IMG/VR virus record: IMGVR_UViG_3300047560_000921
Span: 62,001-126,000 of that record
Strand: one strand, 5' to 3'
DNA length: 64,000 nucleotides
The position numbers were made by a program, and so were the translations under genes. Below the pieces are notes generated by a model. It ran no database searches, was not told where the DNA came from, and worked only from the letters and a program-made list of their open reading frames with translations. Below, piece after piece: positions 8,745 through 52,150 of this stretch. How positions within the stretch are numbered: the first letter of the stretch is position 1; every line of letters starts with the position of its first letter.

Positions 8745-8756
8745 TTATTTTTCCTA

Positions 8757-27476: not shown

Positions 27477-28529
27477 ATGGCATATGATGTCAATAAAACA
27501 GATGGTACGCTACTGACAAGTATTGCTGATGGCACCTTGGATGTTAGCACCAGCATTAGGCTAGTAGGTAAAAACTACGCAGGCTATGGCGAAGTAATGG
27601 CTGAAAACCTAGTAGCAATGCTAGAAAACTTTTCATACCCTACGGCTCCTGCTAATCCTGTTGTCGGACAACTTTGGTTCAACAAAGGCAACAAGGCATT
27701 AAGCGTATTTGATACTAGTGGTGCATGGAAAGAAATTGCCAACAGATATATCAGAGATTCTGAGCCAATCGTCGACGGTAACAGAACTGGTGACTTTTGG
27801 TTTAATCCTACTACAAAGACATTGTACGTTTGGGACGGATCTAAGTGGGTAATGTTAGGATTCCCTGACAGTAACACTATTGTATATTCTAGTATTCGTG
27901 ACGTTAACGGTTTATACCATGATGTTATTATTCACTATAATACTGAAAAAGTTCCAGCTGATCCGTTATACCCAACAGTAAACATTACAGCTACTAAGTT
28001 GATTATGGCAATTATGAGTGCAGACGAGTTTACTCCTGCTACTACAGAAACAGCCATTATCGGCGAGTTCCCAACGATCGGCAAAGGTATGAACTTACCA
28101 ATCCGCACAGGAGTTAAGTTCCGCGGTGTTGCTGTACAAGCAGAATTTGCTGACGTTGCAGAATATTATGAATCAGATGTTCCTTATAGTCCAGGAACAG
28201 TGGTTAAATTGGGCGGAGAAAAAGAAGTCACACAAACACAAAGCGAAGCAGACGACCAAGTGTTTGGTGTTGTTTCTACTGACCCAGCGTTTATACTTAA
28301 CGGTGCTGGCTTGCGTAAAGGTGCGGCACTTCCAGTAGCATTAACAGGTCGTGTACCAGTGCAAGTAATTGGCCCAGTATGGAAAGGCGCTAGATTAGTT
28401 TCTAGCCATATCCCAGGCGTTGCAAAAGCAGTTGAGCGACCAGACCCCTACACAGTAATTGGTCGATCACTTGCAAATTCAGATGATCAAGGAATACGAT
28501 CAATCGAGGCTGTTGTAGGAGTACGTTAA
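27477..28529 (+). CDS. Tail fibre-like protein with conserved C-terminal domain
   Basis: LVGKNYAGYGE..AEN...LENF, two GQLW/GDFW fibre repeats, ADVAEYY...GVVSTDP..VALTGRVPV C-terminus. Confidence 0.7.
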   Translation: MAYDVNKTDGTLLTSIADGTLDVSTSIRLVGKNYAGYGEVMAENLVAMLENFSYPTAPANPVVGQLWFNKGNKALSVFDTSGAWKEIANRYIRDSEPIVDGNRTGDFWFNPTTKTLYVWDGSKWVMLGFPDSNTIVYSSIRDVNGLYHDVIIHYNTEKVPADPLYPTVNITATKLIMAIMSADEFTPATTETAIIGEFPTIGKGMNLPIRTGVKFRGVAVQAEFADVAEYYESDVPYSPGTVVKLGGEKEVTQTQSEADDQVFGVVSTDPAFILNGAGLRKGAALPVALTGRVPVQVIGPVWKGARLVSSHIPGVAKAVERPDPYTVIGRSLANSDDQGIRSIEAVVGVR

Positions 28530-28530: not shown

Positions 28531-29577
28531 GTGTCAGATTTTATCCAAGGTCAAATAATAACAGCGGCTCAGTGGAATGAGCTAGCTCAGGCCGTGAATA
28601 AAATCTGGGGTGACGATATGGCCGGCGGCGGCCCAACCGCTGATCCGGTACTTAAAGAAGCATTAAAGTATGGCTGGGGACAAAGTCCGTTGGCCCAACA
28701 AGCAGTAGCAGGTAATACTATTGATCATACATTATGGAATAGTACAATTGATATTGTTAACATTTCTGCACATAATACAGGCGCCCTGGCATTAGGAACG
28801 AACTTAGCTAGAACAGCAACAGGACAAAAGATTACAGCAGCACAAGCTCAAGTGCTTAACGTCCTTAACTCACTAGTCGATGCAAATCGCAATAATTTAG
28901 TAGCGGCAAGAAAACAATTTGCCACACTAGGAACTAACTCTAGAACTGCTCCATGGAAAAATAAAATTTCCGCTGAAGTACATTATCAATTTGGTAGCTT
29001 TGACAACGCACGTTATTTCTTTAATAGTGGCGGACAGTTACGACTACATATGACGGCTAGCGGCGGATCAACCCGCGGATACCAGTCATGGCAACAAGTA
29101 TACGGAAAGCTAGGTACATTTGTTTTAGATATCAACTCTTGCACTAACACCGGCACTTATGCTGTAAGTGAAAGCAAAGGCTTCTACGAATTGTCGGCCA
29201 CAGAAACATTACTAATGACAGCTACCAGTTCGGGTAGCGGCAGTGGGTATGGCGGCTACGGCGGCTACGGCGGCTATGGGGGATACGGCTGTTATGGCGG
29301 CTACGGTGGCTACGGCGGCTATGGCGGCTACGGCGGATACGGAAGCTACTGTACATTCAGATTGAAAGTATACGGAAGATTGGTTGACAACGGCACAGTT
29401 GCTATTAGATTTGAAATGGATAGTACTGCATTTAGGATCAATGTTGACGGCACACATGTATTAACCGCCAACGTATTATATGCGGCCCCAGATACATACG
29501 GTGATGCACAATTCAATATTCCAGCTCCAAATTATTATTTGGCAGATGGATTTGACACAGCCGGCTTAGACAACTAA
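28531..29577 (+). CDS. Virion/tail-associated protein with a Gly-Tyr-Gly tract
   Basis: G..ITAAQWN collar-like repeats and ARYFFNSGG motif; GYG tract near the C-terminus. Confidence 0.65.
   Translation: MSDFIQGQIITAAQWNELAQAVNKIWGDDMAGGGPTADPVLKEALKYGWGQSPLAQQAVAGNTIDHTLWNSTIDIVNISAHNTGALALGTNLARTATGQKITAAQAQVLNVLNSLVDANRNNLVAARKQFATLGTNSRTAPWKNKISAEVHYQFGSFDNARYFFNSGGQLRLHMTASGGSTRGYQSWQQVYGKLGTFVLDINSCTNTGTYAVSESKGFYELSATETLLMTATSSGSGSGYGGYGGYGGYGGYGCYGGYGGYGGYGGYGGYGSYCTFRLKVYGRLVDNGTVAIRFEMDSTAFRINVDGTHVLTANVLYAAPDTYGDAQFNIPAPNYYLADGFDTAGLDN
29245..29352 (+). repeat. 9-bp tandem coding repeat: (GYG)5-CYG-(GYG)5-SYC
   Basis: ggc-tay-ggn units with synonymous variation; 12 Tyr in 36 codons. 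Confidence 0.95.
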
Positions 29578-29625
29578 AATAATTGCGATAAATAACTGCG
29601 TACTTAATACACAGAGAGAATCGCA

Positions 29626-29979
29626 ATGGATAAACGTCTTCAGGAAGCGTTAGACTTTAGTAACTATAGACTAACGCTATCTAATCAAAAAAACAATCTT
29701 AAACAACGAGCAGAAGTTCAAAAGCTCGTAAACCACAATAATGGAATCTTCACAGCTCGTGTAGAACAAATGGGCTACATAAGCTATTTGATTTCCAGCG
29801 GCGCAGAGCAACAGGTGTTCATGGACAACAACGATATACCTGTGCTAGTTAAAGACTTGCCTGTATTTTTAGAAAAACTTAACAGTGCATACACTATGGC
29901 TATGAATGAGTTCTTTGTGGAAAACGAAAAGCTCAAGCGCCTGCGTAATGTAAAAAGTTTGGTTAACTTAAATGAGTAA
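29626..29979 (+). CDS. Hypothetical protein, possibly a tail-fibre chaperone-like helical protein
   Basis: First gene after TAAATA at 29589; coupled to the glycosyltransferase block. Confidence 0.5.
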   Translation: MDKRLQEALDFSNYRLTLSNQKNNLKQRAEVQKLVNHNNGIFTARVEQMGYISYLISSGAEQQVFMDNNDIPVLVKDLPVFLEKLNSAYTMAMNEFFVENEKLKRLRNVKSLVNLNE

Positions 29980-30856
29980 CGGTGTAGTTCTTTTTGCCTA
30001 CACTAACGATACTATCGATTACACTAAACTAGCTGTAATGACAGCGTTGTCTGTAAAGGCAAATTTAAAAAACAATAATGTAGCATTGCTAACAGATGTA
30101 AAAACACAGGATCATTTGTTGGCAACACATCCTGCTGATTTGATTAGATATTGCTTCGACAAAATTATAGTCGAAGATTTAACACACGATGAGAATACTC
30201 GTGTACACAACGACAGTCCGTGGCATTCTTTTAGAACACAGTTTAGCAACGGTAACAAACATAACGTTTACAATTTGAGTCCATGGGATAAGAGTTTACT
30301 AATAGACGTTGATTACATTGTAAACAGTAACGCACTAGACAGTCTGTTTGATTCTGATTATGAACTTGCACTGTTCAGAAATGCAAGAGGCTTACGATGG
30401 GAATTACCACACCACGAAGAACAACGTTTACATCCTGACGGAATCGACATGTGGTGGAGCACAGTTGTATATTGGCAACGTAGTGAACCTAGTACACAGT
30501 TCTTTAATATGTGGCACCATGTTAAAGAGAACTACGACTATTACAAGTTCCTTTATAAGTTCCCTGGTAAGATGTTTAGAACAGATTATGCGTCCAGCAT
30601 AGCCATACATTTGTTAAACGGACAGCGAGAAGGTAACTGGGTTAAAGAAATTCCGCCTGGCACCATGCGTTACATGGATCAAAAAGATGAAATGGTAAGC
30701 ATCAACGGCAAGAATGATTTTACTTTCCTCAGTAACTTCCATCATGAACCATGGCGAAATTTGCCAGTGAGGCTAGTCAATGAAGATATCCATATGATGA
30801 ACAAGCTGGCGTTACTAAGGCACTATGATAAGTTTGTAAAGGAATACTATGTCTAA
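29972..30856 (+). CDS. Glycosyltransferase-like (GT-A fold)
   Basis: GVVLFA..Y.KLA...ALS, SPWDKSLLIDVDY (DxD), C-terminal HMMNK. Confidence 0.65.
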   Translation: MSNGVVLFAYTNDTIDYTKLAVMTALSVKANLKNNNVALLTDVKTQDHLLATHPADLIRYCFDKIIVEDLTHDENTRVHNDSPWHSFRTQFSNGNKHNVYNLSPWDKSLLIDVDYIVNSNALDSLFDSDYELALFRNARGLRWELPHHEEQRLHPDGIDMWWSTVVYWQRSEPSTQFFNMWHHVKENYDYYKFLYKFPGKMFRTDYASSIAIHLLNGQREGNWVKEIPPGTMRYMDQKDEMVSINGKNDFTFLSNFHHEPWRNLPVRLVNEDIHMMNKLALLRHYDKFVKEYYV

Positions 30857-31664
30857 GGGAATTATAACTTATGCAAACAATGAGCAGTACATCAAGCAAG
30901 CGGTAATACTAGCAGTAACAGCACGTAAAAATAGTAACTTGCCGGTATCGCTAGTCGTTCCTGAATCCGTAGTAGTTGACGATTCATTTAGAAACTACTT
31001 TGATACAGTAATTTCGCTAGAGCTTAGTGTTGGGCCTGACAGGGGCTTATTAGATACTTTGACTAATAGTCCTTACGAAAATACACTGTTCTTGTATAGT
31101 GACTCTTTAGTATTGTCTGATATTAATGATATCTATGCACAGCTAGACTTTTATGACATTGTCATGAATGATCAGTTGCTCGACTTTAAAGGCAGCAACA
31201 TTACTAGACAGTTATATGAGCAACGTAAAATTATAGTCAAGAACAATTTAACTGATGTATGGAGCAATGCTATCTTGTATAAGAAAACGGATAACTTGTT
31301 GGAATGGACCAAGTTGGCACACCGCATTATTACATTTTGGCAATTTTTCAGGGATCAACACTTAACTGAGTACGGTATAGACGATAAGCTACGTTTAAAG
31401 TTTAACACTGCATTATGTCTAGCTATGAAATTAGCAGACACTACTGTGGCCCGAGGATTTCCGCTTACAACATTATCCATGCAAGAAGAAAACACTGCAA
31501 GTTTAGCATGGGCCAACTTGGACTGGTTTGTATTTTTAAATGCATGGATATTAGACAACGGGCAAGTTAAAGTTGAAAACTATGTTCAGTCAGGAATACT
31601 TCATTACGGCAAGAGTTGGATGAACGATGATATTTACAATAGACTACTAAAAGTATATGCATGA
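30849..31664 (+). CDS. Glycosyltransferase-like paralog with degenerate DxD
   Basis: KGIITYA..YIKQA..LA, SPYENTLFLYSDS, LHY.K; collinear with 29972..30856. Confidence 0.55.
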   Translation: MSKGIITYANNEQYIKQAVILAVTARKNSNLPVSLVVPESVVVDDSFRNYFDTVISLELSVGPDRGLLDTLTNSPYENTLFLYSDSLVLSDINDIYAQLDFYDIVMNDQLLDFKGSNITRQLYEQRKIIVKNNLTDVWSNAILYKKTDNLLEWTKLAHRIITFWQFFRDQHLTEYGIDDKLRLKFNTALCLAMKLADTTVARGFPLTTLSMQEENTASLAWANLDWFVFLNAWILDNGQVKVENYVQSGILHYGKSWMNDDIYNRLLKVYA

Positions 31665-32640
31665 TAGTTTAAAACAATTTGCAGAATTTTTTGAAGTAGT
31701 CAAACAGCCGCCGGTACAGTACTACGTTTACTACAATCCAGAAAACGGGTCGATAGATAAAATACAAACACATCAGCAAGCCACCGGTGAGTATATAGTG
31801 TTAGATGACGCAAACAGTTATATACAAAGTATCCTAACTGCGAAGTCTAGTGAAAACGATTACATTGTTGCATTTGACAAGGAACAAGATACAAAAGGTC
31901 TTTTTAAGAAAGACACTTTCCTTAGAAAGCTACATTCTAATAATGACAACCTGTATGGTATACCGTTCAAAGCTGAAGCAGACTTTAAAGATCAAATCAA
32001 TTTAAATTTTCATCTGAGTACACAACGACTGGAAATAGCAGTCAATAGGTCAGCGTTGGAAAACTTATTAAAGGCAGTACACACTGAAAAGATACATTTG
32101 CAGACTTCTGAAAAGATTGTGTTTTATATAACTGACAAATACGATCCAAACCTTATACACGATACGATTGTTTGCGACCCAGATGCATTATTAAATAGTA
32201 GACTAAATTTTAAGTTAGATTGGCTAACAGAAGAAAAGCTAAACAGAATAATAATTTGGACAAAGCGTTTCTTCCATTCGTATTCTTGGAGTTGGCAGGC
32301 AGTTCAATATGTTACCCCAGTGGCCAACGGCGACATATACAGCATCAATAATGGACATTGTTCCGCATCACCTGACTGCCACTTACGGTTGCAATTTACT
32401 AACAATGGTGTTATTATTACTAGTAACCTTAAAGATCCTGCCAACGTTAAATTTTATGATGAACTGGCATGCCATGTTATAAAAGGCAATGACCCTAGTC
32501 AGTACTATGGTACGTTTAGTATACCTCCTGATAAAGTTGCTAACGGCCAAACATACACAATCGATTATGTAAAGCCAATAGATGACTTAGGCATTATTTT
32601 TAATAACACGAATATACGATTACACTGGACAACAGAATGA
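31657..32640 (+). CDS. Hypothetical protein
   Basis: 327-aa ORF translationally coupled within the GT block; two IT/IK..DP repeats. Confidence 0.6.
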   Translation: MHDSLKQFAEFFEVVKQPPVQYYVYYNPENGSIDKIQTHQQATGEYIVLDDANSYIQSILTAKSSENDYIVAFDKEQDTKGLFKKDTFLRKLHSNNDNLYGIPFKAEADFKDQINLNFHLSTQRLEIAVNRSALENLLKAVHTEKIHLQTSEKIVFYITDKYDPNLIHDTIVCDPDALLNSRLNFKLDWLTEEKLNRIIIWTKRFFHSYSWSWQAVQYVTPVANGDIYSINNGHCSASPDCHLRLQFTNNGVIITSNLKDPANVKFYDELACHVIKGNDPSQYYGTFSIPPDKVANGQTYTIDYVKPIDDLGIIFNNTNIRLHWTTE

Positions 32641-33620
32641 TAGTACCTATTACAGAATTTGATGTAGTTTTTATGAGCTACGATGAACCCAATGCAGATG
32701 AAAACTATGCAGACTTGCTAACTAAAATTCCATGGGCACTACGAAGCCACGGTGTTAAAGGTAGCGATGCTTGCCATAAGGCCGCGGCCGCGCTATGCTC
32801 TACAGACAGATTCATTACTATTGACGCTGATAACATTGTTAGAGAAGATTTCATGAACATTCAGATTGACATTAACAAAATTGACCGCAGTGATGTTATT
32901 AGCTGGGCTGGTAAGAATGTAGTTAACGGTTTAGTCTACGGCAACGGTGGGATTAAGTGCTGGCCAAGACATGTGGTAGAGCAAATGAAAAGCCATGAAG
33001 CATCGGATACACCCGAAAGCCAAGTTGATTTTTGCTGGAACATTAATTACATTCAAATGAATAATGTGTATAGCGATGTGCTTAATAACGCAACTCCCTA
33101 TCAGGCATATCGTGCAGGATTCCGTGAAGGTGTAAAGCTAGGATTGGAGCGTGGCGTAACAGTTGATCCTAGAAAATTTAAACAAGCAGTTCACTATAAA
33201 AATTATCAACGTTTGCTAGTATGGGCTAGTGTTGGAGCAGATGTACCCAATGGCGAATGGGCAGTATATGGTACTCGTCTTGGATGTTACTTGACTAACA
33301 TGAAACGAGATGAGTTTGATTTTGTCAATGTCAGAGACTTTGAGTGGCATGACGAATTTTGGGCCAAAGAAGTTGCACCTAAATTCTCTGGCAATGGCAA
33401 AACTTGTCCTCGTAGCGGATACAGCTGGGACCCGCAAGCATTACAACAGGAAACATTAAGACTGGGTGTAATATTAAAACAAGAATTAGGACTAGAGTTA
33501 GCAGACTTAGACGCCGAAGCAAGCAAATTCTTTAAAGCAACCTATGTAAACCCTAATAGGCTCGGACCAATGATTCGAGAGGACTCAGTACTCAAGGGAG
33601 TGGGATCAGACAATGAGTGA
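32637..33620 (+). CDS. Glycosyltransferase-like (GT-A), family B copy 1
   Basis: FDVVFMSYDEPNA, HGVKG..HKAAA, IDAD, NGLVYGNGG.K, GFREGVKL. Confidence 0.7.
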   Translation: MIVPITEFDVVFMSYDEPNADENYADLLTKIPWALRSHGVKGSDACHKAAAALCSTDRFITIDADNIVREDFMNIQIDINKIDRSDVISWAGKNVVNGLVYGNGGIKCWPRHVVEQMKSHEASDTPESQVDFCWNINYIQMNNVYSDVLNNATPYQAYRAGFREGVKLGLERGVTVDPRKFKQAVHYKNYQRLLVWASVGADVPNGEWAVYGTRLGCYLTNMKRDEFDFVNVRDFEWHDEFWAKEVAPKFSGNGKTCPRSGYSWDPQALQQETLRLGVILKQELGLELADLDAEASKFFKATYVNPNRLGPMIREDSVLKGVGSDNE

Positions 33621-35025
33621 TTATAGTTACTTTAATCAAAGATTAGGACACATTAAACAGGTTATCGATAATGTAAGTCCTAGCTTCTGTGCGGCTAAAT
33701 GGACGCAAGTAACTATTCATTTACAAACAGGAATGACGCATAGTTGCCACCATCCTATGCAACATAAGATTCCGTTAGAAGAAATTAAATCTAATCCTAG
33801 CGCCCTGCACAATACTGCGTACAAAAAGAACCAACGTGCTCAAATGTTAAACGGCGAGCGGCCACGTGAGTGTGACTATTGCTGGAGAGTGGAAGATACA
33901 GAAGGTACTCACTTTAGCGACAGGATATTAAAGACTGCCGAAGAGTGGAGCTACCCATACATGCATAAGATTGTCAATGCACCGTGGGACGATAACACTA
34001 TACCAAGCTATGTTGAAGTTAGTTTTGGTAACGGTTGTAATTTTAAATGTGCATATTGCAGTCCTGATATTAGTAGCAAGTGGATGGAGGAGTCCACTAA
34101 GTATGGCCCGTACAATTTGGAACATACTGTATTCAATAACGTTGAGCGTCTTAAAGAGCTGGATAGAATGCCTATACCTGACAGAGAAGACAATCCTTAT
34201 GTAGATGCCTGGTGGGCTTGGTGGCCAGAGTTGTATCCTAACTTACACACATTCCGTATTACGGGCGGTGAGCCACTGATGAATAAAAATACATTTAGGA
34301 CATTGGATTACATAGAAGCTAATCCTAACCCTAATTTGAATTTTGCAATTAACACTAACTTGTGTTTGCCTGACAGCATCATCGATAAGACTATTGCTCA
34401 ATTGAATAGGATTACTTCTAATAAGGCTGTAAAGAAACTACACATCTATACTAGTGCTGACACTTATGGTCCACATGCAGAGTACATTCGCAATGGCATG
34501 GATTATAGACAGTGGTACAAGAACATGCAACGCATTATCAAAGAATGTCCGGATGTAAGCGTTACAATTATGGTTACGTTTAACGTAATGAGCTTGCCTA
34601 TGTTTAAGTATTTCTTAGAAGATGTGGCAGCAATTAAGAACGATACAACAATTTTACGCACAGAAGAACGTAAGCATCCGTTGTACGTAGACTTTCCATA
34701 TTTAAGACATCCTGAGTTTTTAAGTAGTTTGATTGCTAGTGATAGTATGAAGGCCAGCTTTAACGAATGTGTGGATTACATTAAAGAAAACTTAGGGCAC
34801 GGTCACAAGCACCCGGATCACTTTGGGTTCTATCAGCATGAGCTACATGCCGCAGAGCGTATACAGCATTTGTTAGCCAATCATAAACTAAGTGAAGAAC
34901 AATTAAAAAAGAATCGTAGAAGTTTTGCATTGTTTATTGAAGAGCATGACAAGCGCCGCGGCACAAACTTTAAGGTAACGTTCCCAGAGCTTATCCCATT
35001 CCTTAAGGAGTGTAGAAATGCTTGA
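33613..35025 (+). CDS. Radical SAM protein with N-terminal twitch/SPASM-like domain
   Basis: CNFKCAYC, TGGEP, N-terminal C..KW...SC...CDYCW. Confidence 0.9.
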   Translation: MSDYSYFNQRLGHIKQVIDNVSPSFCAAKWTQVTIHLQTGMTHSCHHPMQHKIPLEEIKSNPSALHNTAYKKNQRAQMLNGERPRECDYCWRVEDTEGTHFSDRILKTAEEWSYPYMHKIVNAPWDDNTIPSYVEVSFGNGCNFKCAYCSPDISSKWMEESTKYGPYNLEHTVFNNVERLKELDRMPIPDREDNPYVDAWWAWWPELYPNLHTFRITGGEPLMNKNTFRTLDYIEANPNPNLNFAINTNLCLPDSIIDKTIAQLNRITSNKAVKKLHIYTSADTYGPHAEYIRNGMDYRQWYKNMQRIIKECPDVSVTIMVTFNVMSLPMFKYFLEDVAAIKNDTTILRTEERKHPLYVDFPYLRHPEFLSSLIASDSMKASFNECVDYIKENLGHGHKHPDHFGFYQHELHAAERIQHLLANHKLSEEQLKKNRRSFALFIEEHDKRRGTNFKVTFPELIPFLKECRNA

Positions 35026-35725
35026 TGTTATCTTCTTAAGCTACAACGAACAATATGCAGACCGTAACTATGAACGTCTGCTAGAAATTGCTCCACATGC
35101 AAAGCGAGTACACGGTGTTAAGGGTATATTAAACGCACACCAAGCTGCCGCACGTAAGAGCATGACTAACAACTTTTACATCGTTGATGCAGATGCGTAT
35201 ATAGTTGACGAGTTTGATTTTAGTTACACACCTACACAAAAGGAATTGATATACGGAAGAATCCCGTCAACTGATTGTGTATTCTGCTGGGCAAGCAAAA
35301 ATCCAATCAATGGATTAGAATACGGCTACGGCGGCGTTAAGTTGTTCCGTAAAGATTTATTGTTAGCTGTCACTGACTGGAGAGTTGACTTAGCAACCAG
35401 CATGGGTGCAGAGTTTGTTAGCAAGCCCGAAGTAAGTAACATCACGGCATTTAACACAGACGCTTATAGTACTTGGCGTAGTGCGTTTAGAGAATGTACT
35501 AAACTGGCTAGCGGTATAATTAGTGATGATGCTGTTACTGCTAGTAGACTCGATACGTGGTGCTCAGTAGGAGCAGACGCTCAATGTGGATCGTATGCTA
35601 TTGCAGGTGCAATAGCAGGCAAAGACTACGGAACTTTGAATAAAGATAACGTAGAAGCACTTAAATTAATTAACGACTTTGATTGGTTATATGATAGATT
35701 TAAACAACATTACCCAAACGTCTAA
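35018..35725 (+). CDS. Glycosyltransferase-like (GT-A), family B copy 2
   Basis: DVIFLSYNE, HGVKGI..AH.AAA, VDAD, NGLEYGYGGVKLF, AFRECTKL, INDFDWL. Confidence 0.7.
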   Translation: MLDVIFLSYNEQYADRNYERLLEIAPHAKRVHGVKGILNAHQAAARKSMTNNFYIVDADAYIVDEFDFSYTPTQKELIYGRIPSTDCVFCWASKNPINGLEYGYGGVKLFRKDLLLAVTDWRVDLATSMGAEFVSKPEVSNITAFNTDAYSTWRSAFRECTKLASGIISDDAVTASRLDTWCSVGADAQCGSYAIAGAIAGKDYGTLNKDNVEALKLINDFDWLYDRFKQHYPNV

Positions 35726-37775
35726 GTTCAATGTAATATTTGTTAATCAGCCGTACACAGACATAGAGCTAGCCGAAATGTGTAATGGCAAAACAACATG
35801 GTTTGTTAACGGTGAAATACAAGACGCAGAAGTATTTGACGGATTTGACTGGGGGTTCACACCAGTGGGCTACGAGTCAAAAAACTTGCACATGTGGGTA
35901 TGGCCAGACAGGAGCTTTTGGTTAGCTAAATTGATTCCTGCCAGATGGGACCTAGGTTATGTGCAATATATTACCGAACCAAAACGTAGAGTTACAGTTA
36001 GTACATATTACAACGGTGATGCACAATCTATGCTAGAGTATTTGCCGCCTACATACGATTTGAAATACGAACATGTTTGGTTATTTGACGTTACAACAAC
36101 AGACGGCAATGACATAGAGGCAGTTAGAATATCTTATGTTTCCGAGCCACAAGGCTTAAAAATCGTAGATAAAACTACAAAAAATGTCTTTAATTTAGTT
36201 AAAAATCCTGCCCTGCCTGACAGGGCATACGTAGGCATAGACACCAGCAACAAATTCCACTATAGTCAAGGAAAGTATAGACATGTATGGAACTTGGGCG
36301 GAGATGTTACCCTGCCTAATTATGACGTATGGGCTTATAGTTTAGAACCTGCTACATTTGTGGGTACAGTAGTAGAAGGCAAATTGGAAGTAACTGATTT
36401 TTACAAAGATATGACATGGGAAGTCAATCCGTTATTTGAAAATATTAAGTTTGCCGATTTCAATTTTGACTACAAGCCCTTGGCAGACAAAATGAATCTA
36501 GTACATACGTGGTACCTAGACTCTAGCTACACACCTCCAGGCGAACGTATATGGGCAGTTAGATTAACTCCTACTAACAGTTGCATGGGAGAGCTGGACA
36601 TGGGCCAACTTAGTTTAAACTTAACACCTAAAGTCATAGTGAACCCAGACTTCCAGTTGTATGATTGGAACAACGTTGTTAGCAAGTTCACACCCAGCTA
36701 CGATAGTTTGCAGTTTTTACATGTATGGTATTGCGAAGGAACAGATAAGAAGTACGGCGTTAAGATATCCTTTACAGATACAACAACAGGATACAAAGAG
36801 CATGGCTATGCTCGCCCATTTATGACAGAATGGAGCATGGGCCCGGGCGACACCAAACTGTATTGGCATTTTGATAAAGACTGTTACCCTGTTCCGCAGT
36901 GGAACAGAAAGTTTATGCCAGCTAGAGGTAATGAGTCTAAGGTGCATGTGTTTACGATGACTAATCCCAAGACTGGCCGTGTAACAGATTGGACAGGATG
37001 TTACCTTGTACCTAACGGTGTAGTACTTACAGACAAACTACGTAAGTCAGCAGTTAAGTGCTTTGAGCATGGCTGCACCGAGCAAGAGTTTGATATTGTG
37101 TTTTTAAGCAATGGCGAACCATATGCAGACGCAAACTTTGCCAAGCTAGAAAAGTTAGTACATGATAAGTCTAAGCTACACAGGGTAGATAGAGTTAAAG
37201 GTATCCTGGAAGCACACAAGGCCGCCGCCGATATTGTTACTACGGAAATGTTTTACCTAGTAGATGCAGACTGCGTCATTGAGGGTAGCTTTGCATTTGA
37301 CTTATATCCTAAATCCCATGACCGGGACACTGTATATGTTTGGCATGTACGTAACCCTGTCAACGGTTTAACATATGGATATGGTGGCGTAAAATTATTC
37401 CCCACACAGTTATTAAGAGACACTAAAGAATGGAAAATAGACTTAGCTACAAGCATTGGGGCAAAGTTTAAAGTATTGCCTAGAACAATAGGCTCTACAG
37501 AGTTTAACTGCGATCCGGAAACAGCATGGCGTAGTGGATTTAGAGAAGCAGCTAAACTTGCCAGCAAGATTATTAAAAATCAAGTTGATGCAGAAACAGA
37601 TCGTCGACTTGAAACATGGTGTACAGTTGATTTAGGTGTACCCAACGGAGAACATGCTATGCAAGGAGCACAGTGTGGCCGCACATGGGCACAAAACCAT
37701 CCTAGTTTAATTGATAAAATTAACGACTTCGAATGGTTACACAAACAATGGTTAAATTATGTTACTACAGAGTAA
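35691..37775 (+). CDS. Repeat-containing protein with C-terminal family B glycosyltransferase domain (start uncertain)
   Basis: C-terminal FDIVFLS.GEP, VDAD, NGLTYGYGGVKLF, GFRE..KL, INDFEWL; N-terminal H[VMT]W repeats. Confidence 0.7.
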   Translation: MIDLNNITQTSKFNVIFVNQPYTDIELAEMCNGKTTWFVNGEIQDAEVFDGFDWGFTPVGYESKNLHMWVWPDRSFWLAKLIPARWDLGYVQYITEPKRRVTVSTYYNGDAQSMLEYLPPTYDLKYEHVWLFDVTTTDGNDIEAVRISYVSEPQGLKIVDKTTKNVFNLVKNPALPDRAYVGIDTSNKFHYSQGKYRHVWNLGGDVTLPNYDVWAYSLEPATFVGTVVEGKLEVTDFYKDMTWEVNPLFENIKFADFNFDYKPLADKMNLVHTWYLDSSYTPPGERIWAVRLTPTNSCMGELDMGQLSLNLTPKVIVNPDFQLYDWNNVVSKFTPSYDSLQFLHVWYCEGTDKKYGVKISFTDTTTGYKEHGYARPFMTEWSMGPGDTKLYWHFDKDCYPVPQWNRKFMPARGNESKVHVFTMTNPKTGRVTDWTGCYLVPNGVVLTDKLRKSAVKCFEHGCTEQEFDIVFLSNGEPYADANFAKLEKLVHDKSKLHRVDRVKGILEAHKAAADIVTTEMFYLVDADCVIEGSFAFDLYPKSHDRDTVYVWHVRNPVNGLTYGYGGVKLFPTQLLRDTKEWKIDLATSIGAKFKVLPRTIGSTEFNCDPETAWRSGFREAAKLASKIIKNQVDAETDRRLETWCTVDLGVPNGEHAMQGAQCGRTWAQNHPSLIDKINDFEWLHKQWLNYVTTE

Positions 37776-38583
37776 AGACTTATTATACGGACTAGACGAG
37801 TACATTACAGTACAAACAAATCCTAAGTTGTTCAGAGCAATCTACAACTACATACATCATAAAAGTACAGAAAACAGGAATGCTATAGCAGATGGCGTTC
37901 CGTACATGTTACGCACTAAAACTTTAGCGACCTTGGATAGACTTGATAACAATGATACAGACGTAGACGTACTAATTGATTTGTTTTTAACTTGTCATGC
38001 AGTTGATGCAAAGTTTATTAGTAACCTGCGTACAGCAGTAAAAGAATTTCCAGAAGTTAATTGGCGCGATGGCCTGAGCAGATTCCAAATGCAAAGTAAG
38101 GTATGGGCCGCAAACATCTTAAAGAGCTATGACTTGGGTAATGTATATTTGTGTGGCGGCTGGATAGGGACACTAGCCCGTGTAATATTTGATGTATCTA
38201 AGTCAACTGCTACTATTACTAGCTTTGACATAGACGATGTTGCCAATAAAGCTAGCATGATACTAAATCTAGAATTAGCTAGTTCGGGTAAGTATGCGGC
38301 AGTAAATCAAGACATATACACTTTAGATTACACAGTTCCTGACACAGTAGTAAACACTATCTGTGAACATGTACCAGACTTCCAGCGCTGGCTGGATATG
38401 ATTCCTAGCGGCAAGTTAGTGTTATTGCAAACAAACAATATGTTTGAAATGACAGACCATGTAAATTGTGTAGAAACTTTAGAAGAATTTAAAACGCAAT
38501 GCCAGGACGTTGACATTGCGTATTCGAATACAATCAGTTATGCTGGGTGGCACAGATTTATGATTGTTGGAGTTAAACGTTAA
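37759..38583 (+). CDS. Class I SAM-dependent methyltransferase-like
   Basis: LCGGWIG (motif I-like), SFDID, NTICEH, RFMIVG. Confidence 0.6.
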   Translation: MLLQSKDLLYGLDEYITVQTNPKLFRAIYNYIHHKSTENRNAIADGVPYMLRTKTLATLDRLDNNDTDVDVLIDLFLTCHAVDAKFISNLRTAVKEFPEVNWRDGLSRFQMQSKVWAANILKSYDLGNVYLCGGWIGTLARVIFDVSKSTATITSFDIDDVANKASMILNLELASSGKYAAVNQDIYTLDYTVPDTVVNTICEHVPDFQRWLDMIPSGKLVLLQTNNMFEMTDHVNCVETLEEFKTQCQDVDIAYSNTISYAGWHRFMIVGVKR

Positions 38584-38909: not shown

Positions 38910-39536
38910 TTAGTTTATCAAATGTTCGGCATCTTTTAAGACGGATACTTCGGGATCGTGTTCGGACTTTAGTGTGTAGCTTTTTATAATAACTGGGGTA
39001 GGATTTCTGCCCTCTAGAATCCCTAAAATATTACTGCCGAATTCATACTTTGCCCTGCTATACGGTGGTACGATTTCTACAATTTTTACATCGTATAAAT
39101 GATTTCTACTTTCGGGCCCAAGTCGATGTATACCTTTTACTGTACTTTTTGTGTGCTGGTAGTCTCTTGCCATGTAGCATACCTTCCGTCCAAAGTTATT
39201 TGCACTGTCCAGGAATACTGGAGTTAGAAACTCGTTAATTACATGCAAGTTTTCTTTTAGCATAGAAAACTTATGCCTGTCGGCAAACACATTGCCTATA
39301 GTAGCGTAAGGCATACTAGACCAATGAGACCTGGTAACAAACATAGACATTTCTTCCTGCTCATTAAACCAACCCCATGCGCTATGTCCCAGCTCATTAT
39401 TAGCACTGATGTTAAATGATTTTCTAAAGTATTGGTCAATAGCAGTAGTAATCTTAACTTTCATGTTAGACCCGTGCGCTTGATATATTTCAAGCATACG
39501 TGGCAAGTCGGCACTAGTGAGTTTGCGTACACTCAT
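38910..39536 (-). CDS. GNAT-like protein, paralog A
   Basis: VRKLTSADL..MLEI start; collinear with 43558..44175. Confidence 0.5.
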   Translation of the reverse strand: MSVRKLTSADLPRMLEIYQAHGSNMKVKITTAIDQYFRKSFNISANNELGHSAWGWFNEQEEMSMFVTRSHWSSMPYATIGNVFADRHKFSMLKENLHVINEFLTPVFLDSANNFGRKVCYMARDYQHTKSTVKGIHRLGPESRNHLYDVKIVEIVPPYSRAKYEFGSNILGILEGRNPTPVIIKSYTLKSEHDPEVSVLKDAEHLIN

Positions 39537-40603
39537 AGATAGTCGGTGATGTTAATATTGTCAACAAATTCAAACTTGTCAGTAATAAAGTTATGGACAC
39601 GGCGATATCTAAACACACCTGGCAAGCTAGGGAATTTAGTCTTACGTGCAAGATAGTCTTCGTCTTTAGACAATTTGTAAATTAGTTCTTTAGCAGGGAA
39701 TTTGTAACTAACCCATGTATCTTTGATTTTACTATTGGGATTGTTCAAACTCCATTGTTGCCATTCTTCGCCTGCCCAAAAGTGACATACATGCCTATCC
39801 ATCCATGCATCGTCAATATTCTGCGAATCGTTCTTGTGACTTAAAATACGGAACTCTACTGCCTGCCACTTCATTGCAAAGTTCTGATACCACAAGTAGT
39901 CACTCCATGTTTTAATTTCCCAGGGGCAGTTTTTAATGAGCAGTTCCATTTGATCCAAGAACCACTTAGTGCGCTCTTCGTTACCAATCCTGGCATTAAA
40001 GAAATCAAAGGCAAACACTTTATAGTTGCTGTTGATTACAGATTCTGTGCCAAAGAAGTCGATGCTAGACTTTAATGTTAAGCTACCAAATACGTTATCT
40101 GCAAACTCACCAGTGATAACATAGTTGAAGCTGTTGAAGTAATTCTCAAAGCTATTGGAACTTTCTGTCTTGTAGTTACGCTTAATAACAGTTTCGTACA
40201 AGGTAGGATTTTCCTGTATACTATTGCTGTTTAAGATAATTAGCAATCGTTCTTTGAATTCTTTACTAGCATAGGTATGCATTATGTTTACAATTAGCGT
40301 ACTATCGATGCCCCCGCTATACATAATAACAGGTCTTAGATGTGTAGTCCTAACGTGTTGTTCAATCTTTTGCCATGTTAAGTAACATAGTTCTTCGAAC
40401 GTGTGCGTAAACGTTCTTACTTGAGGCATGGGATGCCTGTTAACTAGGTTAACAGGAAACTTAATAGTATTAGTTCTATCTACTAAGCTGATGCCACTGT
40501 TAAATGCTTTACTGAATACACTGTACTTGTCTAAAGCAGGGTATTGTTTACACCATTCTGGCTTGTATAAATCTAACTGGTTGTAATAAAGTAGTGCGCT
40601 CAT
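39533..40603 (-). CDS. Asparagine-synthetase C-terminal-like adenylating enzyme (no glutaminase domain)
   Basis: MYSGGIDST PP-loop and ITGEFADNVFG (AsnB GEGADE.FG motif); K..AK..I motif. Confidence 0.75.
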   Translation of the reverse strand: MSALLYYNQLDLYKPEWCKQYPALDKYSVFSKAFNSGISLVDRTNTIKFPVNLVNRHPMPQVRTFTHTFEELCYLTWQKIEQHVRTTHLRPVIMYSGGIDSTLIVNIMHTYASKEFKERLLIILNSNSIQENPTLYETVIKRNYKTESSNSFENYFNSFNYVITGEFADNVFGSLTLKSSIDFFGTESVINSNYKVFAFDFFNARIGNEERTKWFLDQMELLIKNCPWEIKTWSDYLWYQNFAMKWQAVEFRILSHKNDSQNIDDAWMDRHVCHFWAGEEWQQWSLNNPNSKIKDTWVSYKFPAKELIYKLSKDEDYLARKTKFPSLPGVFRYRRVHNFITDKFEFVDNINITDYL

Positions 40604-41220
40604 AGTAAAATATTCAAAAATGTCTCTTTGTGTAAGTTATCCATAACTTGTTTAACTTCGTTGGCAGTAGTTGCAGCCTTTAACAGTCTTAGGTATTTGA
40701 TTCTAAACCATTCAGTCTTTGTCATCATTTCCAAGTGCATGGTATACTGTAAAATGATTTGGTCAGCCGCTTGCTCTGCGGTGCAGTTGTCTAGCTCTGC
40801 ATAGTCTAATACTAATTGTACATTACTCAAGCCGACTAAGTTTGCATCATAGCCGTGTGTCCTGAGTAGTACAGCCTGGTCGTATTTCATTTTGTATACT
40901 TCGTCTTGGCCGGCACATACTTCTATTTCCTTAACTCTAGCTAGATTAATCTTAGTAAGGATATCATAGTAGCTCCATTGCTTGTACTCGACGAACTTGC
41001 GATATTCGTCGATGTTTTCGCCCGGACTGTATACTATTTTAGATCCACGTAAAATAAAATCACTAGGGTTAGATTTAAATTGCTGTTCTAGTGACTTATC
41101 TAAGTCTCCTGTATATACGTGCGTATCAAAGAAACATTCGTTAACAAAATATAAATGTTTCTTCTCTGGTGTAGAAAGCAAAACCCGATTAAGGCTGTTA
41201 GTTAATATGTGTACCCACAT
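40600..41220 (-). CDS. Hypothetical helical protein, weakly like tail-fibre assembly proteins
   Basis: GQDEVY..KY.QA...YA......EQAADQI...R......AATT.NEV pattern. Confidence 0.45.
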   Translation of the reverse strand: MWVHILTNSLNRVLLSTPEKKHLYFVNECFFDTHVYTGDLDKSLEQQFKSNPSDFILRGSKIVYSPGENIDEYRKFVEYKQWSYYDILTKINLARVKEIEVCAGQDEVYKMKYDQAVLLRTHGYDANLVGLSNVQLVLDYAELDNCTAEQAADQIILQYTMHLEMMTKTEWFRIKYLRLLKAATTANEVKQVMDNLHKETFLNILL

Positions 41221-41231
41221 GTCTGTCTCTC

Positions 41232-42779
41232 TTATAAATTTAAAAGTCTGTTTTTATAAAGCTGGAACCATTCTGCTTTTTTGTCTTTAAGGAAGTCTGC
41301 ACTAACGTTTTTAACGCTCACGCCTGCTAAGTCGTCGGCAGTAAGTCCAGTACCGTTCATCCACATAAACTGGAAGAACCCTGCAGGCTTAATACGACCG
41401 CTACGATATCCGCGCATAATATATTCGTCTGCAATAGCCCATGCCTTAGGTAAAGTCATATGCGGATTGCTCCACATGCTCCATCTAAAGAAGCTGTTGT
41501 TAGCAACACCTTTGTTGACGATGTTATATCCGTAAGATTCGGGATCAGCTTCGAACTTGCTAGGCCAGATTTTCTTTTCGTTAATGTTGAAGCCCAAAGG
41601 TTCAACTGTATATCCGTCTAGTGGACAGTTTTCGTCTTCGACCCACTTCATCCATTCGCGGAATGTTTCTTCCGTTTCGTGCGGCAAGCCTACAATAAAC
41701 CCACTGCTCATTGTAATGTCTTTGCCCCATGCTTCGTCTCGCAACCAGTGTAATAGTTCTTTGCTTTTCTCTGGGTGCAGTCCTTTGCCAATGGCTAACG
41801 CACTCTTATGGTTTAAACTTTCTAATCCAAATACACAGGTTTTAAGTCCGCTTTCTTTTAGCAGGGGTGCCATGTCCCTATTAGCATGGATTAAATCATG
41901 TCTTAGGTATGCACTAAACTGTATCTTAAAAGGAAGTTGTGAAAAGACTTCGTTGTATAGCTTTTCTACTTTATAGATGCTGTCGTTGTATGTATCGTCT
42001 GCAAAGATATAGTTAGTAATGCCCCACTTTTCGTAGTTACGAATGAACTCTTCTTTTAACGGCGCACTATCCTTGATGTAGTCGAACTTGTCTTTGCCGT
42101 TCATAGGAAAACTACAAAAGTCGCATCTAAAGATACATCCACGACTAATTTCAATGGGCAACACTTCGTTTTCGTAGATTAAGTCATTGTCTTCCCATAG
42201 TACTTGACTGGTTTGAAAATTCCACTCAGGGTCTTTAATCCAATCGACTTCAACTTGATGCTCGTTGATAGGAACCATTTTAAGTACAGTTTCGTCGTAA
42301 GGCTTACCTGCCAAGAAGTTAGCGTACTCTACTGTAGTATGGTCAGCATAGCCATGAATGAAGCAGTCTACTAGTTTACTGTTCTTGTATTGGCTACGTT
42401 GCCCGCCTAGTACAATTTTTGTCTTGGGATTTACTTGTTTGATATGATTAATAAACGCATAACTGACTTCAGGCTTAAACGGAAAGTCTTCAGTATATCT
42501 TAATTCGCGCCTATAGTGGTTAGGCCTACTTTTATCGCTTAGTGCTTGGTCTCTGATAGCATACAAGGTGCTACTGAATCCAACGAATAATGTGTTAGGA
42601 CCTACAAACTTGTCTACAATTTGTTTAAGCTCGTCCAAGCTCCATTCGGTTAAGTAGTCGACAACTTGTACTGTATAACCGTTCTTTCTTAATTCCGTAG
42701 CAATGCGATAAGCACCTAGTAGGCGCTGAAAAACCGTAGTGCTAGTGAACTCCGTAAAAATTACAATGTCTGCTGTCAT
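41232..42779 (-). CDS. Cobalamin-binding-domain radical SAM enzyme
   Basis: LGAYRIAT.LR.NGY.VQVVD, VGFS, IVLGG (B12 domain); EISRGCIFRCDFC; FADDT; FGLES; FIVGLPHET. Confidence 0.9.
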   Translation of the reverse strand: MTADIVIFTEFTSTTVFQRLLGAYRIATELRKNGYTVQVVDYLTEWSLDELKQIVDKFVGPNTLFVGFSSTLYAIRDQALSDKSRPNHYRRELRYTEDFPFKPEVSYAFINHIKQVNPKTKIVLGGQRSQYKNSKLVDCFIHGYADHTTVEYANFLAGKPYDETVLKMVPINEHQVEVDWIKDPEWNFQTSQVLWEDNDLIYENEVLPIEISRGCIFRCDFCSFPMNGKDKFDYIKDSAPLKEEFIRNYEKWGITNYIFADDTYNDSIYKVEKLYNEVFSQLPFKIQFSAYLRHDLIHANRDMAPLLKESGLKTCVFGLESLNHKSALAIGKGLHPEKSKELLHWLRDEAWGKDITMSSGFIVGLPHETEETFREWMKWVEDENCPLDGYTVEPLGFNINEKKIWPSKFEADPESYGYNIVNKGVANNSFFRWSMWSNPHMTLPKAWAIADEYIMRGYRSGRIKPAGFFQFMWMNGTGLTADDLAGVSVKNVSADFLKDKKAEWFQLYKNRLLNL

Positions 42780-43546: not shown

Positions 43547-43551
43547 ATGCG

Positions 43552-43557
43552 TATTTA
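43552..43557 (-). promoter_or_regulatory. Late promoter TAAATA 5 nt before the desaturase ATG
   Basis: TAAATA-CGCAT-ATG; same spacing as at 10084 and 14028. Confidence 0.55.
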
Positions 43558-45970: not shown

Positions 45971-45971
45971 A

Positions 45972-52044: not shown

Positions 52045-52072
52045 TGTATAGTGCTCCTAACTATTTAATATG

Positions 52073-52102: not shown

Positions 52103-52107
52103 TATCG

Positions 52108-52139: not shown

Positions 52140-52150
52140 AGGAGCAACCA

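Follow-up and report, generated by a model that had tools for sequence, protein, structure and literature searches.

In order to evaluate whether the run of glycosyltransferase-like genes located directly behind the last tail-fiber gene of a jumbo phage could serve to decorate that fiber with a modified glycan, a window of 64,000 nucleotides (positions 62,001 to 126,000 of the IMG/VR record IMGVR_UViG_3300047560_000921) was analyzed by profile, structure and synteny comparisons. The initial annotation, based on sequence alone, had described a Tyr-repeat protein followed by a translationally coupled run of glycosyltransferase (GT)-like, radical SAM and methyltransferase genes, and had proposed a late operon building a modified glycan on tail or fiber proteins rather than on DNA. 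The observation was confirmed, as all the open reading frames were found where they had been placed, while the interpretation was only partly supported: the module represents a widespread and previously undescribed putative glycosylation system, for which a virion-fiber target is plausible but unproven, and linkage to Tyr is speculative.

Gene content and organization of the locus

The features of the locus are summarized in Table 1. The Gly-Tyr-Gly tract of GYG348 holds 12 Tyr and one internal Cys. In a close relative (locus L002, 83% amino acid identity) the tract has three more units, resulting in 15 Tyr and a 27-bp length difference. The identification of GYG348 as the last tail gene rests on homology: the family HMM matched the PA5oct protein EST35_0123, annotated as detected in virions by ESI-MS/MS, with a score of 137.5 bits, and in RsoM2USA the same domain is fused to a tail-fiber N-terminal domain. 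The family is large (2841 cluster representatives). The preceding gene showed PHROG hits including phrog_19602 (tail fiber protein), and its homologs precede the Tyr-loop family gene in related loci. Further upstream, baseplate wedge and giant virion protein genes were found, placing the operon at the end of the baseplate/fiber module.

Table 1. Features of the locus, with positions within the 64,000-nucleotide window.
Position	Strand	Feature	Description
27477..28529	+	Tail-fiber-like protein	350 aa; generic fiber N-terminal domain plus a C-terminal domain matching tail-fiber PHROGs
28531..29577	+	GYG348	348 aa, GTG start; distal tail-fiber family protein carrying the (G-Y-G)n tract; candidate glycan acceptor
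29251..29342	+	Tandem repeat	In-frame 9-bp repeat (GGCGGCTAC x10.2, TRF) encoding the Tyr tract; copy number varies between relatives
29589..29594	+	TAAATA motif	Putative late-type promoter core in the 48-nt gap before the operon
29626..29979	+	p117	117 aa; small protein without family hits, first gene after the fiber gene
29972..30856	+	GTa	GT8-like glycosyltransferase with an intact D-V-D motif
30849..31664	+	GTb	GT8 (glycogenin-like) paralog; first Asp of DxD replaced by Tyr, may be inactive or altered
31657..32640	+	u327	Virus-only protein without family hits, weak beta-sandwich hints
32637..33620	+	D1	Member of a new GT-A (GT2-like) family
33613..35025	+	Radical SAM enzyme	N-terminal-twitch family; putative glycan-tailoring enzyme
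35018..35725	+	D2	235 aa; core member of the new GT-A family
35691..37775	+	D3	About six ~70-aa repeats (F.F.P...H-V/M/T-W) followed by a D2-type GT-A domain
37759..38583	+	MT274	Predicted class I SAM-dependent methyltransferase fold with an N-terminal helical domain, like small-molecule and sugar methyltransferases
38910..47709	-	Possible extension of the pathway	B12-binding radical SAM, fatty-acid-desaturase-like, TauD, two Asp/Arg-hydroxylase-like cupins, and an SDR

The TAAATA motif is located 37 nt before the ATG of the first operon gene, and its distribution exceeded chance expectations. Of 22 occurrences on both strands, nine fell in the 3.4% of the window that is intergenic, each 10-35 nt upstream of a start codon, including those of structural genes at 13764, 14039 and 27477. 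However, the motif also precedes non-structural minus-strand genes, and late expression is only inferred. The full T4 late consensus (TATAAATA) was absent, and although a sigma-70-like TTGACA-17-TAAAAT was found at 29552-29580, such sites were not above chance in the region. Nine genes follow, with overlaps of 4-35 nt at every junction from p117 to the methyltransferase. The initial annotation had omitted the first of these genes (p117), and the open reading frame of D3, taken as 698 aa, more likely starts at the ATG at 35691, as called in L002 (694 aa).

Enzyme families encoded in the operon

Folds and profiles supported the enzyme assignments. The GTb family profile matched glycogenin-1 (E 5e-12), its best solved-structure match, in an alignment of only about 105 residues across the nucleotide-sugar/DxD half. 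Within this family the motif column reads Y-S-D in the window and in L002, and D-x-D in most relatives. GTa is its paralog (hhalign against the GTb family, probability 99.8%, E 2e-29), with a weak glycogenin hit (E 0.011) and invariant D112 and D114.

D1, D2 and D3 belong to a new GT-A family without a Pfam model: none of 4376 homologs of D2 carried a Pfam domain or a functional name. The AF2 model of D2 (pLDDT 93.9) was compared by Foldseek, retrieving GT-A/GT2 enzymes such as SunS, PcManGT, RmlT, GtrB, ppGalNAcT and PBCV-1 A64R (E ~1e-4, TM up to 0.44), and D57-A58-D59 was invariant. D1 is 32% identical to D2 (E 6e-30) and retains the DAD motif, while the C-terminal 230 aa of D3 are 43% identical to D2 (E 7e-56), with a weak PF00535 hit below cut-off.

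The radical SAM enzyme matched NCBIfam NF033640 (320.5 bits, cut-off 170) and Pfam Radical_SAM (E 1.2e-10), and shows the CxxxCxxC motif. Its homologs were found in 68 of 85 clustered sources (84 loci retrieved with the D family plus the window), totaling 202 copies, most of these sources lacking any fiber gene or tract. For MT274, the AF2 model (pLDDT 93.3) gave 1084 PDB hits in Foldseek (E<=1e-3), the top ones being the natural-product methyltransferases SgvM, DnrK, BchU, NodS (Nod-factor N-methyltransferase) and RebM (E 2e-9 to 1e-7), while no Pfam hit was found in 20 members of the family. In most loci this gene follows D2. Searches with u327 gave no family hits, and ESM Atlas returned only viral clusters and low-confidence Ig/CBM-like structural neighbors (stored model with pTM 0.32). 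No transmembrane segment was predicted in any of the nine operon proteins, no lipid-carrier transferase or exporter was found in the operon, and no flippase, polymerase or oligosaccharyltransferase domain was found in the window. The opposite-strand genes were assigned by Pfam, and homologs of several of them lie beside D2-methyltransferase-radical SAM genes in other loci (L011, L012, L050 and L091), although their link to the pathway is inferred.

Synteny and distribution

In more than 100 metagenomic phage loci, the fiber family was always followed by p117, GT8, GT8, (u327) and D1. Among 80 loci selected by the fiber family alone, every one showed this order, preceded by the tail-fiber-like gene, as far as the contig reached. 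Among 84 loci selected by the D family alone, GT8 and the fiber family co-occurred in 23 of 23 loci where the upstream sequence was present, and neither occurred in 50. Three more distant lineages showed the same order. The fiber-proximal half of the operon was thus inseparable from the fiber gene family in every locus sampled, yet all fiber-linked loci may descend from a single phage clade, in which case perfect synteny could reflect inheritance rather than functional coupling, and the end of a structural module is also a common insertion point for accessory genes.

By contrast, the D2/methyltransferase/radical SAM part also occurred in many loci without fiber genes nearby, where its acceptor must be something else, including bacterial chromosomes. 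The D1 type was found only in fiber-linked loci and in bacterial D1-D2 pairs; in a Bacteriovoracaceae chromosome, such pairs lie among GT2 genes and a PMT_2-like gene, in an envelope-glycan context. A Streptomyces homolog is located with a GT4-like gene and a zeta-toxin-like kinase. Frequent partners in bacterial genomes and AMG-like contexts were carbamoyltransferase, NDP-sugar epimerase/dehydratase and UDP-Glc dehydrogenase.

In order to test the proposed relationship between the tract and the GT genes, as the initial annotation had suggested, both were compared across relatives. GT gene number did not scale with tract length, and most relatives lacked the tract yet kept the GT set, which, taken literally, is the refutation criterion named in the initial annotation. 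The idea survives in modified form, however, since the tract replaces a loop whose Tyr is present in 149 of the 150 best cluster representatives of the fiber family, the remaining one being truncated. None of these 150 carried the tract, which is restricted to a small sub-clade, although it was kept (9-15 Tyr, with a Cys embedded in every variant) in homologs only 31-34% identical. PA5oct lacks both the loop Tyr and the module. On the other hand, RsoM2USA keeps the operon but lacks that Tyr, and an invariant Tyr may simply be structural.

Putative target of the pathway

The reading that best accounts for these results, to which we assign a probability of roughly 0.45, is that of a soluble, membrane-independent glycosylation pathway, probably expressed late, belonging to the tail-fiber module of a Rak2/RsoM2USA-like jumbo myophage. 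In this view, a fiber-linked layer (p117, the two GT8 transferases, u327 and D1), found only next to the Tyr-loop fiber family, would start a glycan directly on the fiber protein encoded immediately upstream, despite the degenerate DxD of GTb in this phage. A second, portable layer (D2, D3, the methyltransferase and the radical SAM enzyme), which may extend to the oxygenases and the B12 radical SAM enzyme on the other strand and also occurs in bacterial surface-glycan loci, would extend the glycan and then methylate or otherwise tailor the sugars. The acceptor most consistent with the anatomy is the loop holding the nearly invariant Tyr in the C-terminal domain of the fiber, which in this phage lineage has been multiplied into a variable tract of 9-15 Tyr. 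While gene order, folds, motifs, family distribution and synteny were established by the analysis, the late timing, a protein (rather than DNA or lipid) as acceptor, the fiber as that protein and Tyr as the modified residue are inferred, without experimental evidence of glycosylated virion proteins in this lineage; the paper describing RsoM2USA reports no glycan analysis.

Other readings appeared less likely. It is possible, though doubtful, that the glycan is placed on virion proteins but on Ser/Thr or on another protein (other fibers, u327 or the giant protein), the tract being instead a structural, adhesive or cross-linking element of the fiber tip; Gly/Tyr-rich repeats are structural or cross-linking motifs in other proteins. 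The absence of the loop Tyr in RsoM2USA, the independence of GT number from tract length and the narrow distribution of the tract favor this possibility, whereas the glycogenin-like nature of the GT8 pair, its strict co-occurrence with the Tyr-loop family and the retention of the tract across distant homologs, which argues for selection on it, speak against it. Somewhat less likely, the product may not be attached to the virion, and could remodel host LPS or capsule during the long infection (e.g. to stop progeny adsorbing to infected cells or debris), or be a free modified sugar or natural-product-like compound. GT8 enzymes are classical LPS-core transferases, twitch and B12 radical SAM enzymes and carbamoyltransferases are typical of aminoglycoside-type pathways, and the bacterial contexts and partners of the second layer, as well as the neighborhood of the Streptomyces homolog, are in line with this view, yet the lack of membrane proteins, lipid-carrier transferases, flippases or exporters in the operon, the strict linkage of the first layer to a fiber gene, and the motif and orientation shared with structural genes do not favor it.

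Hypermodification of phage DNA through glycosylation of hydroxylated or hydroxymethylated bases was considered very unlikely. Multi-GT clusters building di- and trisaccharides on phage DNA exist, a ThyX gene and several 2OG oxygenases lie within 10 kb on the other strand, and the related PA5oct has modified DNA, proposed to be a 7-deazaguanine. However, in the described systems reviewed here the GTs are located with a ThyA-like hydroxymethylase or a C5-MT plus TET-like dioxygenase, and often with a dCTPase or nucleotide kinase, none of which was found in or next to this operon. Moreover, ThyX is a strong ordinary Thy1 match, the oxygenases are of the TauD and Asp/Arg-hydroxylase types, RsoM2USA is annotated with an ordinary Td thymidylate synthase (E 3e-167) and no hydroxymethylase, the operon is joined to the fiber module, in a setting that looks late and structural, and a bacterial D homolog lies in an envelope-glycan context. 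The least likely alternative was that the radical SAM enzyme acts on the Tyr/Cys tract itself, in a RiPP-like thioether or aryl cross-link, with the transferases being secondary. Twitch/SPASM radical SAM enzymes often cross-link peptides, the tract contains a Cys, and weak NCBIfam hits to peptide maturases were obtained, but the family occurs mostly without any fiber gene or tract, and no radical SAM homolog was detected (BLASTP, E<=1e-8) in the sequence available downstream of the operon in the tract-bearing loci L260-L263.

Comparison with known systems

In mycobacteriophage virion O-glycosylation (Che8-type; Freeman et al. 2023, as summarized in PMC12619734), phage-encoded GT-A glycosyltransferases lie beside structural genes and decorate virion proteins, and the Che8 glycosyltransferase was among the structural neighbors of D2 (E 3e-4). 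There, glycans reportedly sit on C-terminal extensions of capsid and tail-tube subunits, while the candidate acceptor here, inferred from sequence, is an internal loop of a distal fiber protein, the GT families are different (a GT8 pair and a family without a Pfam model), and a radical SAM enzyme and a methyltransferase are also present. Chloroviruses and giant viruses (PBCV-1 A64R and partners) carry out soluble, virus-encoded, host-independent multi-enzyme glycan assembly on a structural protein, including sugar methylation, and A64R appeared among the fold neighbors of D2; those are, however, eukaryotic viruses with N-linked atypical glycans and no radical SAM arrays, without sequence relationship beyond the GT-A fold. 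Glycogenin makes a Tyr-O-glycosidic bond, and a nearly invariant Tyr lies in the fiber family encoded next to the GT8 pair, but glycogenin modifies itself rather than a separate protein, the match to the GTb family is partial, the GTb of the window lacks the first Asp of DxD, and Tyr linkage remains a conjecture here.

In phage DNA glycosylation systems (T4 alpha/beta-GT; 5hmC and 5-hydroxycytosine glycan pathways) several GTs also act in series to build oligosaccharides, although those clusters contain the base-hydroxylating or hydroxymethylating enzyme and nucleotide-pool enzymes and sit among replication or nucleotide-metabolism genes, whereas the operon described here has none of these and sits in the fiber module. 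Finally, the bacterial surface-glycan islands with NF033640-type radical SAM enzymes found here in Bdellovibrionia and marine MAG loci share the D1-D2 pair, the methyltransferase and tandem radical SAM paralogs, but are cellular, are not linked to a fiber-family gene, and lack p117, the GT8 pair and u327.

Gene organization of the region

The predicted ORF map agreed with the arrangement described in the initial annotation, whose observation of a glycosyltransferase-rich gene run behind a Tyr-repeat tail protein was thus confirmed. The open reading frames of the plus-strand run, together with the other features located in the window, are listed below. Every junction from p117 onward overlapped by 4-35 nt, and none of these proteins showed a predicted membrane segment. 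The tract of GYG348 comprised 12 Tyr in Gly-Tyr-Gly units and was encoded by an in-frame 9-bp tandem repeat.

Features located in the window and in two related loci (coordinates refer to the window unless a locus is named).
Feature	Coordinates	Strand	Size
Baseplate hub/lysozyme	4760-6721		
HNH endonuclease gene inside the baseplate module, and neighbouring protein with a QueC-like C-terminal match	10071-10634 and 11335-11970		211 aa (neighbouring protein)
Baseplate wedge	14414-17641		
Virion protein	17643-26771		3042 aa
fib350, fibre-like protein	27477-28529	+	350 aa
GYG348, fibre-family protein with the Tyr tract	28531-29577	+	348 aa
9-bp tandem repeat encoding the Tyr tract	29251-29342		
Gap between GYG348 and p117			48 nt
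p117	29626-29979	+	117 aa
GTa	29972-30856	+	294 aa
GTb	30849-31664	+	271 aa
u327	31657-32640	+	327 aa
D1	32637-33620	+	327 aa
rSAM, radical SAM enzyme	33613-35025	+	470 aa
D2	35018-35725	+	235 aa
D3	35691 (or TTG 35679)-37775	+	694 aa
MT274, predicted methyltransferase	37759-38583	+	274 aa
Intergenic TAAATA motifs	870, 13734, 14028, 27451, 29589; 38907, 43552, 52062, 59518	both	
Cluster of tailoring-type enzymes	38910-49206	-	
DUF2201 metallopeptidase/VWA protein plus MoxR-type AAA ATPase; bpMoxR + DUF58 pair	50800-53230 (window); 6579-8887 (locus L250)	- (window)	
Five-gene operon with a GT-A family homologue (locus L168, Streptomyces sp. CA-146814 chromosome)	6847-11376		

The TAAATA motif preceding p117 was one of 9 intergenic copies among 22 in the window, although intergenic DNA represented only 3.4% of it, and these copies were located 10-35 nt before start codons, including those of structural genes. 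The motif was therefore considered a candidate phage promoter core resembling the T4 late element, although late timing is an inference, and a T4-type late promoter as such was rejected since the full consensus TATAAATA was absent.

Based on PHROG assignments, a baseplate hub/lysozyme, a baseplate wedge, the 3042-aa virion protein and a fibre-like protein were identified upstream of the operon. Megablast of the 10-kb region against 50,697 phage records retrieved no match, and tblastn searches with D2, GTa and the radical SAM enzyme retrieved, among cultured phages, essentially only the 344-kb Ralstonia jumbo phage RsoM2USA, whose ORF346-354 are syntenic and all annotated as hypothetical. This phage belongs with XacN1 and the Rak2-like jumbo phages.

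On the minus strand, the cluster following the operon included a B12-binding radical SAM enzyme, a fatty-acid-desaturase-like protein, TauD, two Asp/Arg-hydroxylase-like cupins, an SDR and ThyX. Homologues of several of them were found beside D2, methyltransferase and radical SAM genes in unrelated loci (L011, L012, L050 and L091), suggesting that the glycan pathway may extend beyond the end of the run delimited in the initial annotation. Also on the minus strand, the DUF2201 metallopeptidase/VWA protein plus MoxR-type AAA ATPase was conserved in related phage loci (L024, L049, L059 and L083). A bpMoxR + DUF58 pair also abutted the D1-D2 pair in a Bdellovibrionia contig, although this may be coincidence.

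Predicted identity of the operon proteins

Searches with single sequences against Pfam, PHROGs and NCBIfam gave nothing for 8 of 10 proteins, and searches of the ESM Atlas with D2, u327 and the D3 repeats returned only unnamed viral clusters, with u327 showing weak beta-sandwich hints. In order to detect more distant relationships, family profiles and structural models were used. The profile of the GTb family matched glycogenin-1 and -2 (E 5e-12 to 3e-8), the alignment with glycogenin extending through the nucleotide-sugar site and the DxD motif, while GTa was linked to GTb as a paralogue by hhalign (99.8%). Both proteins are thus members of GT8 (Pfam Glyco_transf_8), yet remote ones, as single-sequence Pfam searches found nothing at E<=0.1. 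An invariant D-V-D was present in GTa, whereas GTb read Y-S-D both in the window and in L002, the closest relative (a 348,611-bp NCBI metagenome contig), where most relatives read D-x-D. In locus L011 more had been lost (D-P-V, with the downstream His replaced). GTb may therefore be catalytically impaired in this phage, possibly as a pseudo-enzyme partner of GTa.

D1, D2 and the C-terminus of D3 are paralogues of a family with 4376 database homologues, and none of the 120 homologues listed carried a Pfam domain or a functional name. The AF2 model of D2 (pLDDT 93.9) showed a GT-A fold, with 24 PDB hits at E<=1e-3, of which the 21 best were all glycosyltransferases and the other three were HddC, ArnC and B4GALNT1, although TM values were only ~0.4. 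Neighbours at E about 1e-4 were GT2-type enzymes, namely SunS, PcManGT, RmlT, GtrB, ppGalNAc-transferases and PBCV-1 A64R. Among viral models, D2 matched two true family members and, further off, the Che8 glycosyltransferase. D57-A58-D59, corresponding to the DxD motif after beta-4, and E11, in the N-terminal strand motif (YNE/YDE), were invariant in 37 sequences, and D1, D2 and D3 all read D-A-D. Only D3 matched PF00535, with a score (13.8 bits) below the gathering threshold (23.3), and the group was consequently treated as a separate, unnamed family. The N-terminus of D3 contained about six repeats of ~70 aa.

The radical SAM enzyme was a full-length member of NCBIfam NF033640 (N-terminal twitch; residues 22-463, 320.5 bits against a cut-off of 170) and contained the CxxxCxxC motif. 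No Pfam model matched MT274 in any of 20 family members, yet its AF2 model (pLDDT 93.3) was an unambiguous class I methyltransferase with an N-terminal helical domain. Foldseek returned 1084 hits at E<=1e-3, all of the top 50 being SAM-dependent methyltransferase-fold enzymes, and the closest were natural-product methyltransferases, among them the Nod-factor N-methyltransferase NodS and RebM. Alignment with thermospermine synthase covered the G-G-x-x-G loop, D-I-D and the beta-4 Asp.

The fibre protein and its tyrosine loop

The family of GYG348 was large, with 2841 representatives at 50% clustering. Its HMM matched the PA5oct protein EST35_0123 (137.5 bits), which is annotated as detected by ESI-MS/MS and lies at the end of the baseplate/fibre module, and in RsoM2USA the same domain was fused to the generic tail-fibre N-terminal domain. 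The description of GYG348 as the last tail gene in the initial annotation was therefore justified.

In the family alignment, the tract occupied a loop that in nearly all relatives reads S-[ST]-P-Y-[SG]-x-N. The Tyr was present in 149 of the 150 best representatives, the remaining one being truncated, yet it was absent from RsoM2USA. Comparison with loci L002 and L254-L263 showed that the copy number of the 9-bp repeat differed between close relatives (12, 13 and 15 Tyr; three more units in L002 than in the window), and that tracts of 9-15 Tyr, always with one embedded Cys, recurred in homologues only 31-34% identical, indicating that the tract is a maintained feature of a sub-clade and not a one-off slip. 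Covariation of glycosyltransferase gene number with tract length, which had been proposed beforehand as a check, was not seen. The idea that the radical SAM enzyme is tied to the tract was also rejected, as no homologue was detected in the available sequence of the tract-bearing loci L260-L263.

Conservation and linkage of the operon in other loci

In order to evaluate the linkage between the operon and the fibre genes, loci were selected independently by each family. Eighty-four IMG/VR loci were selected by the D family (D1-D3) alone and clustered together with the window (85 sources). The radical SAM family was found in 68 of them (202 copies) and the methyltransferase in 58, while the GT8 pair, p117, u327 and the fibre family occurred in only about a third. 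In those loci, GT8 and the fibre family co-occurred in 23 of 23 cases where the upstream DNA was present, and fifty loci had neither. Eighty loci selected by the fibre family alone, using a subset of its alignment, all showed the order fib, GYG family (one or two copies), p117, GT8, GT8, u327, D1, D2 and (rSAM), as far as each contig reached, and the same order was observed in three more distant lineages reached through the PA5oct protein. The glycosyltransferase genes were thus co-located and co-oriented with structural genes.

Bacterial D1-D2 pairs apart, D1-type proteins occurred only in these fibre-linked loci, while D2-type proteins occurred everywhere. The operon therefore has two layers, one fibre-bound (layer A: p117, the two GT8 proteins, u327 and D1) and one portable (layer B: D2, the methyltransferase and the radical SAM enzymes). 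Frequent partners of layer B were a NodU/TobZ-type carbamoyltransferase, an NDP-sugar epimerase/dehydratase, UDP-Glc/GDP-Man dehydrogenase, a second radical SAM family, PP-loop ATPases and cupin hydroxylases. Some of these IMG/VR loci looked bacterial, with ClpP-, NfuA-, ExbBD- and TctA-like neighbours. In GTDB genomes the family was found in Bdellovibrionia and Bacteriovoracaceae chromosomes, in one case among GT2 genes and a PMT_2-like gene next to cbb3 oxidase genes, and in others with up to eight radical SAM genes. Tandem arrays of up to eight NF033640-type paralogues next to a single D2-methyltransferase pair, an unusual expansion, were found in both phage-like and Bdellovibrionia contigs (L058, L068 and L166). 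The family also occurred as a single gene in Streptomyces and Kitasatospora. These actinomycete homologues were part of a conserved five-gene operon (GT4-like, D, 411 aa, 303 aa and an AAA_33/zeta-toxin-like kinase), with a large HD-CE/wHTH-HSP90-associated protein next to it. Neither this context nor that of an alphaproteobacterial D1-D2 pair, which lay in a mobile island, was informative about the acceptor. Layer B is sugar chemistry borrowed from cellular glycan pathways.

Putative acceptor of the glycan

The interpretation put forward in the initial annotation, namely a late operon building a modified glycan on tail or fibre proteins rather than on DNA, was supported only in part. Gene order, predicted folds, motifs, family distribution and synteny result directly from the analysis, whereas late expression, glycosylation of a virion protein, the fibre as that protein and Tyr as the linked residue are inferred. 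The fibre protein is the simplest acceptor, given the invariable adjacency, shared orientation and shared motif, yet virion-protein glycosylation remains tentative (probability about 0.45), with no glycoprotein staining or MS of virions reported for RsoM2USA, and all the positive cases may be one clade. DNA is an unlikely target. The described phage DNA-glycosyltransferase clusters consulted carry a base hydroxymethylase or a C5-MT/TET pair, and usually nucleotide-pool enzymes, while no such domain (ThyA-like, or C5-MT plus 5mYOX, or nucleotide-pool) was found within 28.5-38.6 kb, in the neighbours scanned or in the syntenic loci, a search that did not cover the rest of the roughly 231-kb genome. 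The nearest candidates were an ordinary ThyX and TauD- or cupin-type oxygenases, all on the other strand, and RsoM2USA is annotated with an ordinary thymidylate synthase. A lipid-linked or exported product is not favoured either, as nothing in the operon is predicted to be membrane-bound.

The glycogenin-like nature of the GT8 pair, together with a nearly invariant Tyr amplified in this lineage, makes Tyr-O-glycosylation an attractive conjecture, although an unlikely one on present evidence. RsoM2USA keeps the operon without that Tyr, and glycosyltransferase number does not follow tract length. PA5oct lacks both the Tyr and the module, but it is a single lineage. In this view, the GT8 enzymes would prime the Tyr in the tip domain of a tail fibre, and the new GT-A family, the methyltransferase and radical SAM enzymes would then build a tailored glycan on it. 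In one lineage the acceptor loop would have become an in-frame 9-bp VNTR encoding 9-15 Gly-Tyr-Gly units, giving a length-variable 'glycan brush' on the fibre that could tune adsorption or shield the receptor-binding tip.

Significance and comparison with known systems

The module is real and widespread. The D-family pattern scan matched at least 600 IMG/VR stretches, of which 597 encode a relative, and the combination of five transferases from two families, a methyltransferase and radical SAM enzymes appears to be a fixed part of the tail-fibre cassette of a widespread group of environmental jumbo phages, with one cultured member, RsoM2USA, that makes it testable. If the fibre is the acceptor, glycans on receptor-binding proteins would become a factor in host range, in resistance to proteases or antibodies, and in phage engineering. 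The results also delimit an unnamed GT-A family shared by phages, Bdellovibrionia and actinomycetes, and show that NF033640 radical SAM enzymes travel in tandem arrays with that family, which gives a handle on the chemistry of a large uncharacterised enzyme family.

Literature searches on jumbo phages with radical SAM enzymes and glycosyltransferases, on NF033640 and on Tyr O-glycosylation found no description of this system. Virion glycosylation in tailed phages is not known to have been shown beyond a few mycobacteriophages. The nearest known systems are mycobacteriophage virion glycosylation (as summarised in PMC12619734) and self-encoded glycosylation in giant viruses, from which the present module, much larger and chemically richer than that shown in mycobacteriophages, differs in its enzyme families, its putative radical SAM and methyltransferase tailoring, its position in the fibre cassette and its candidate acceptor.
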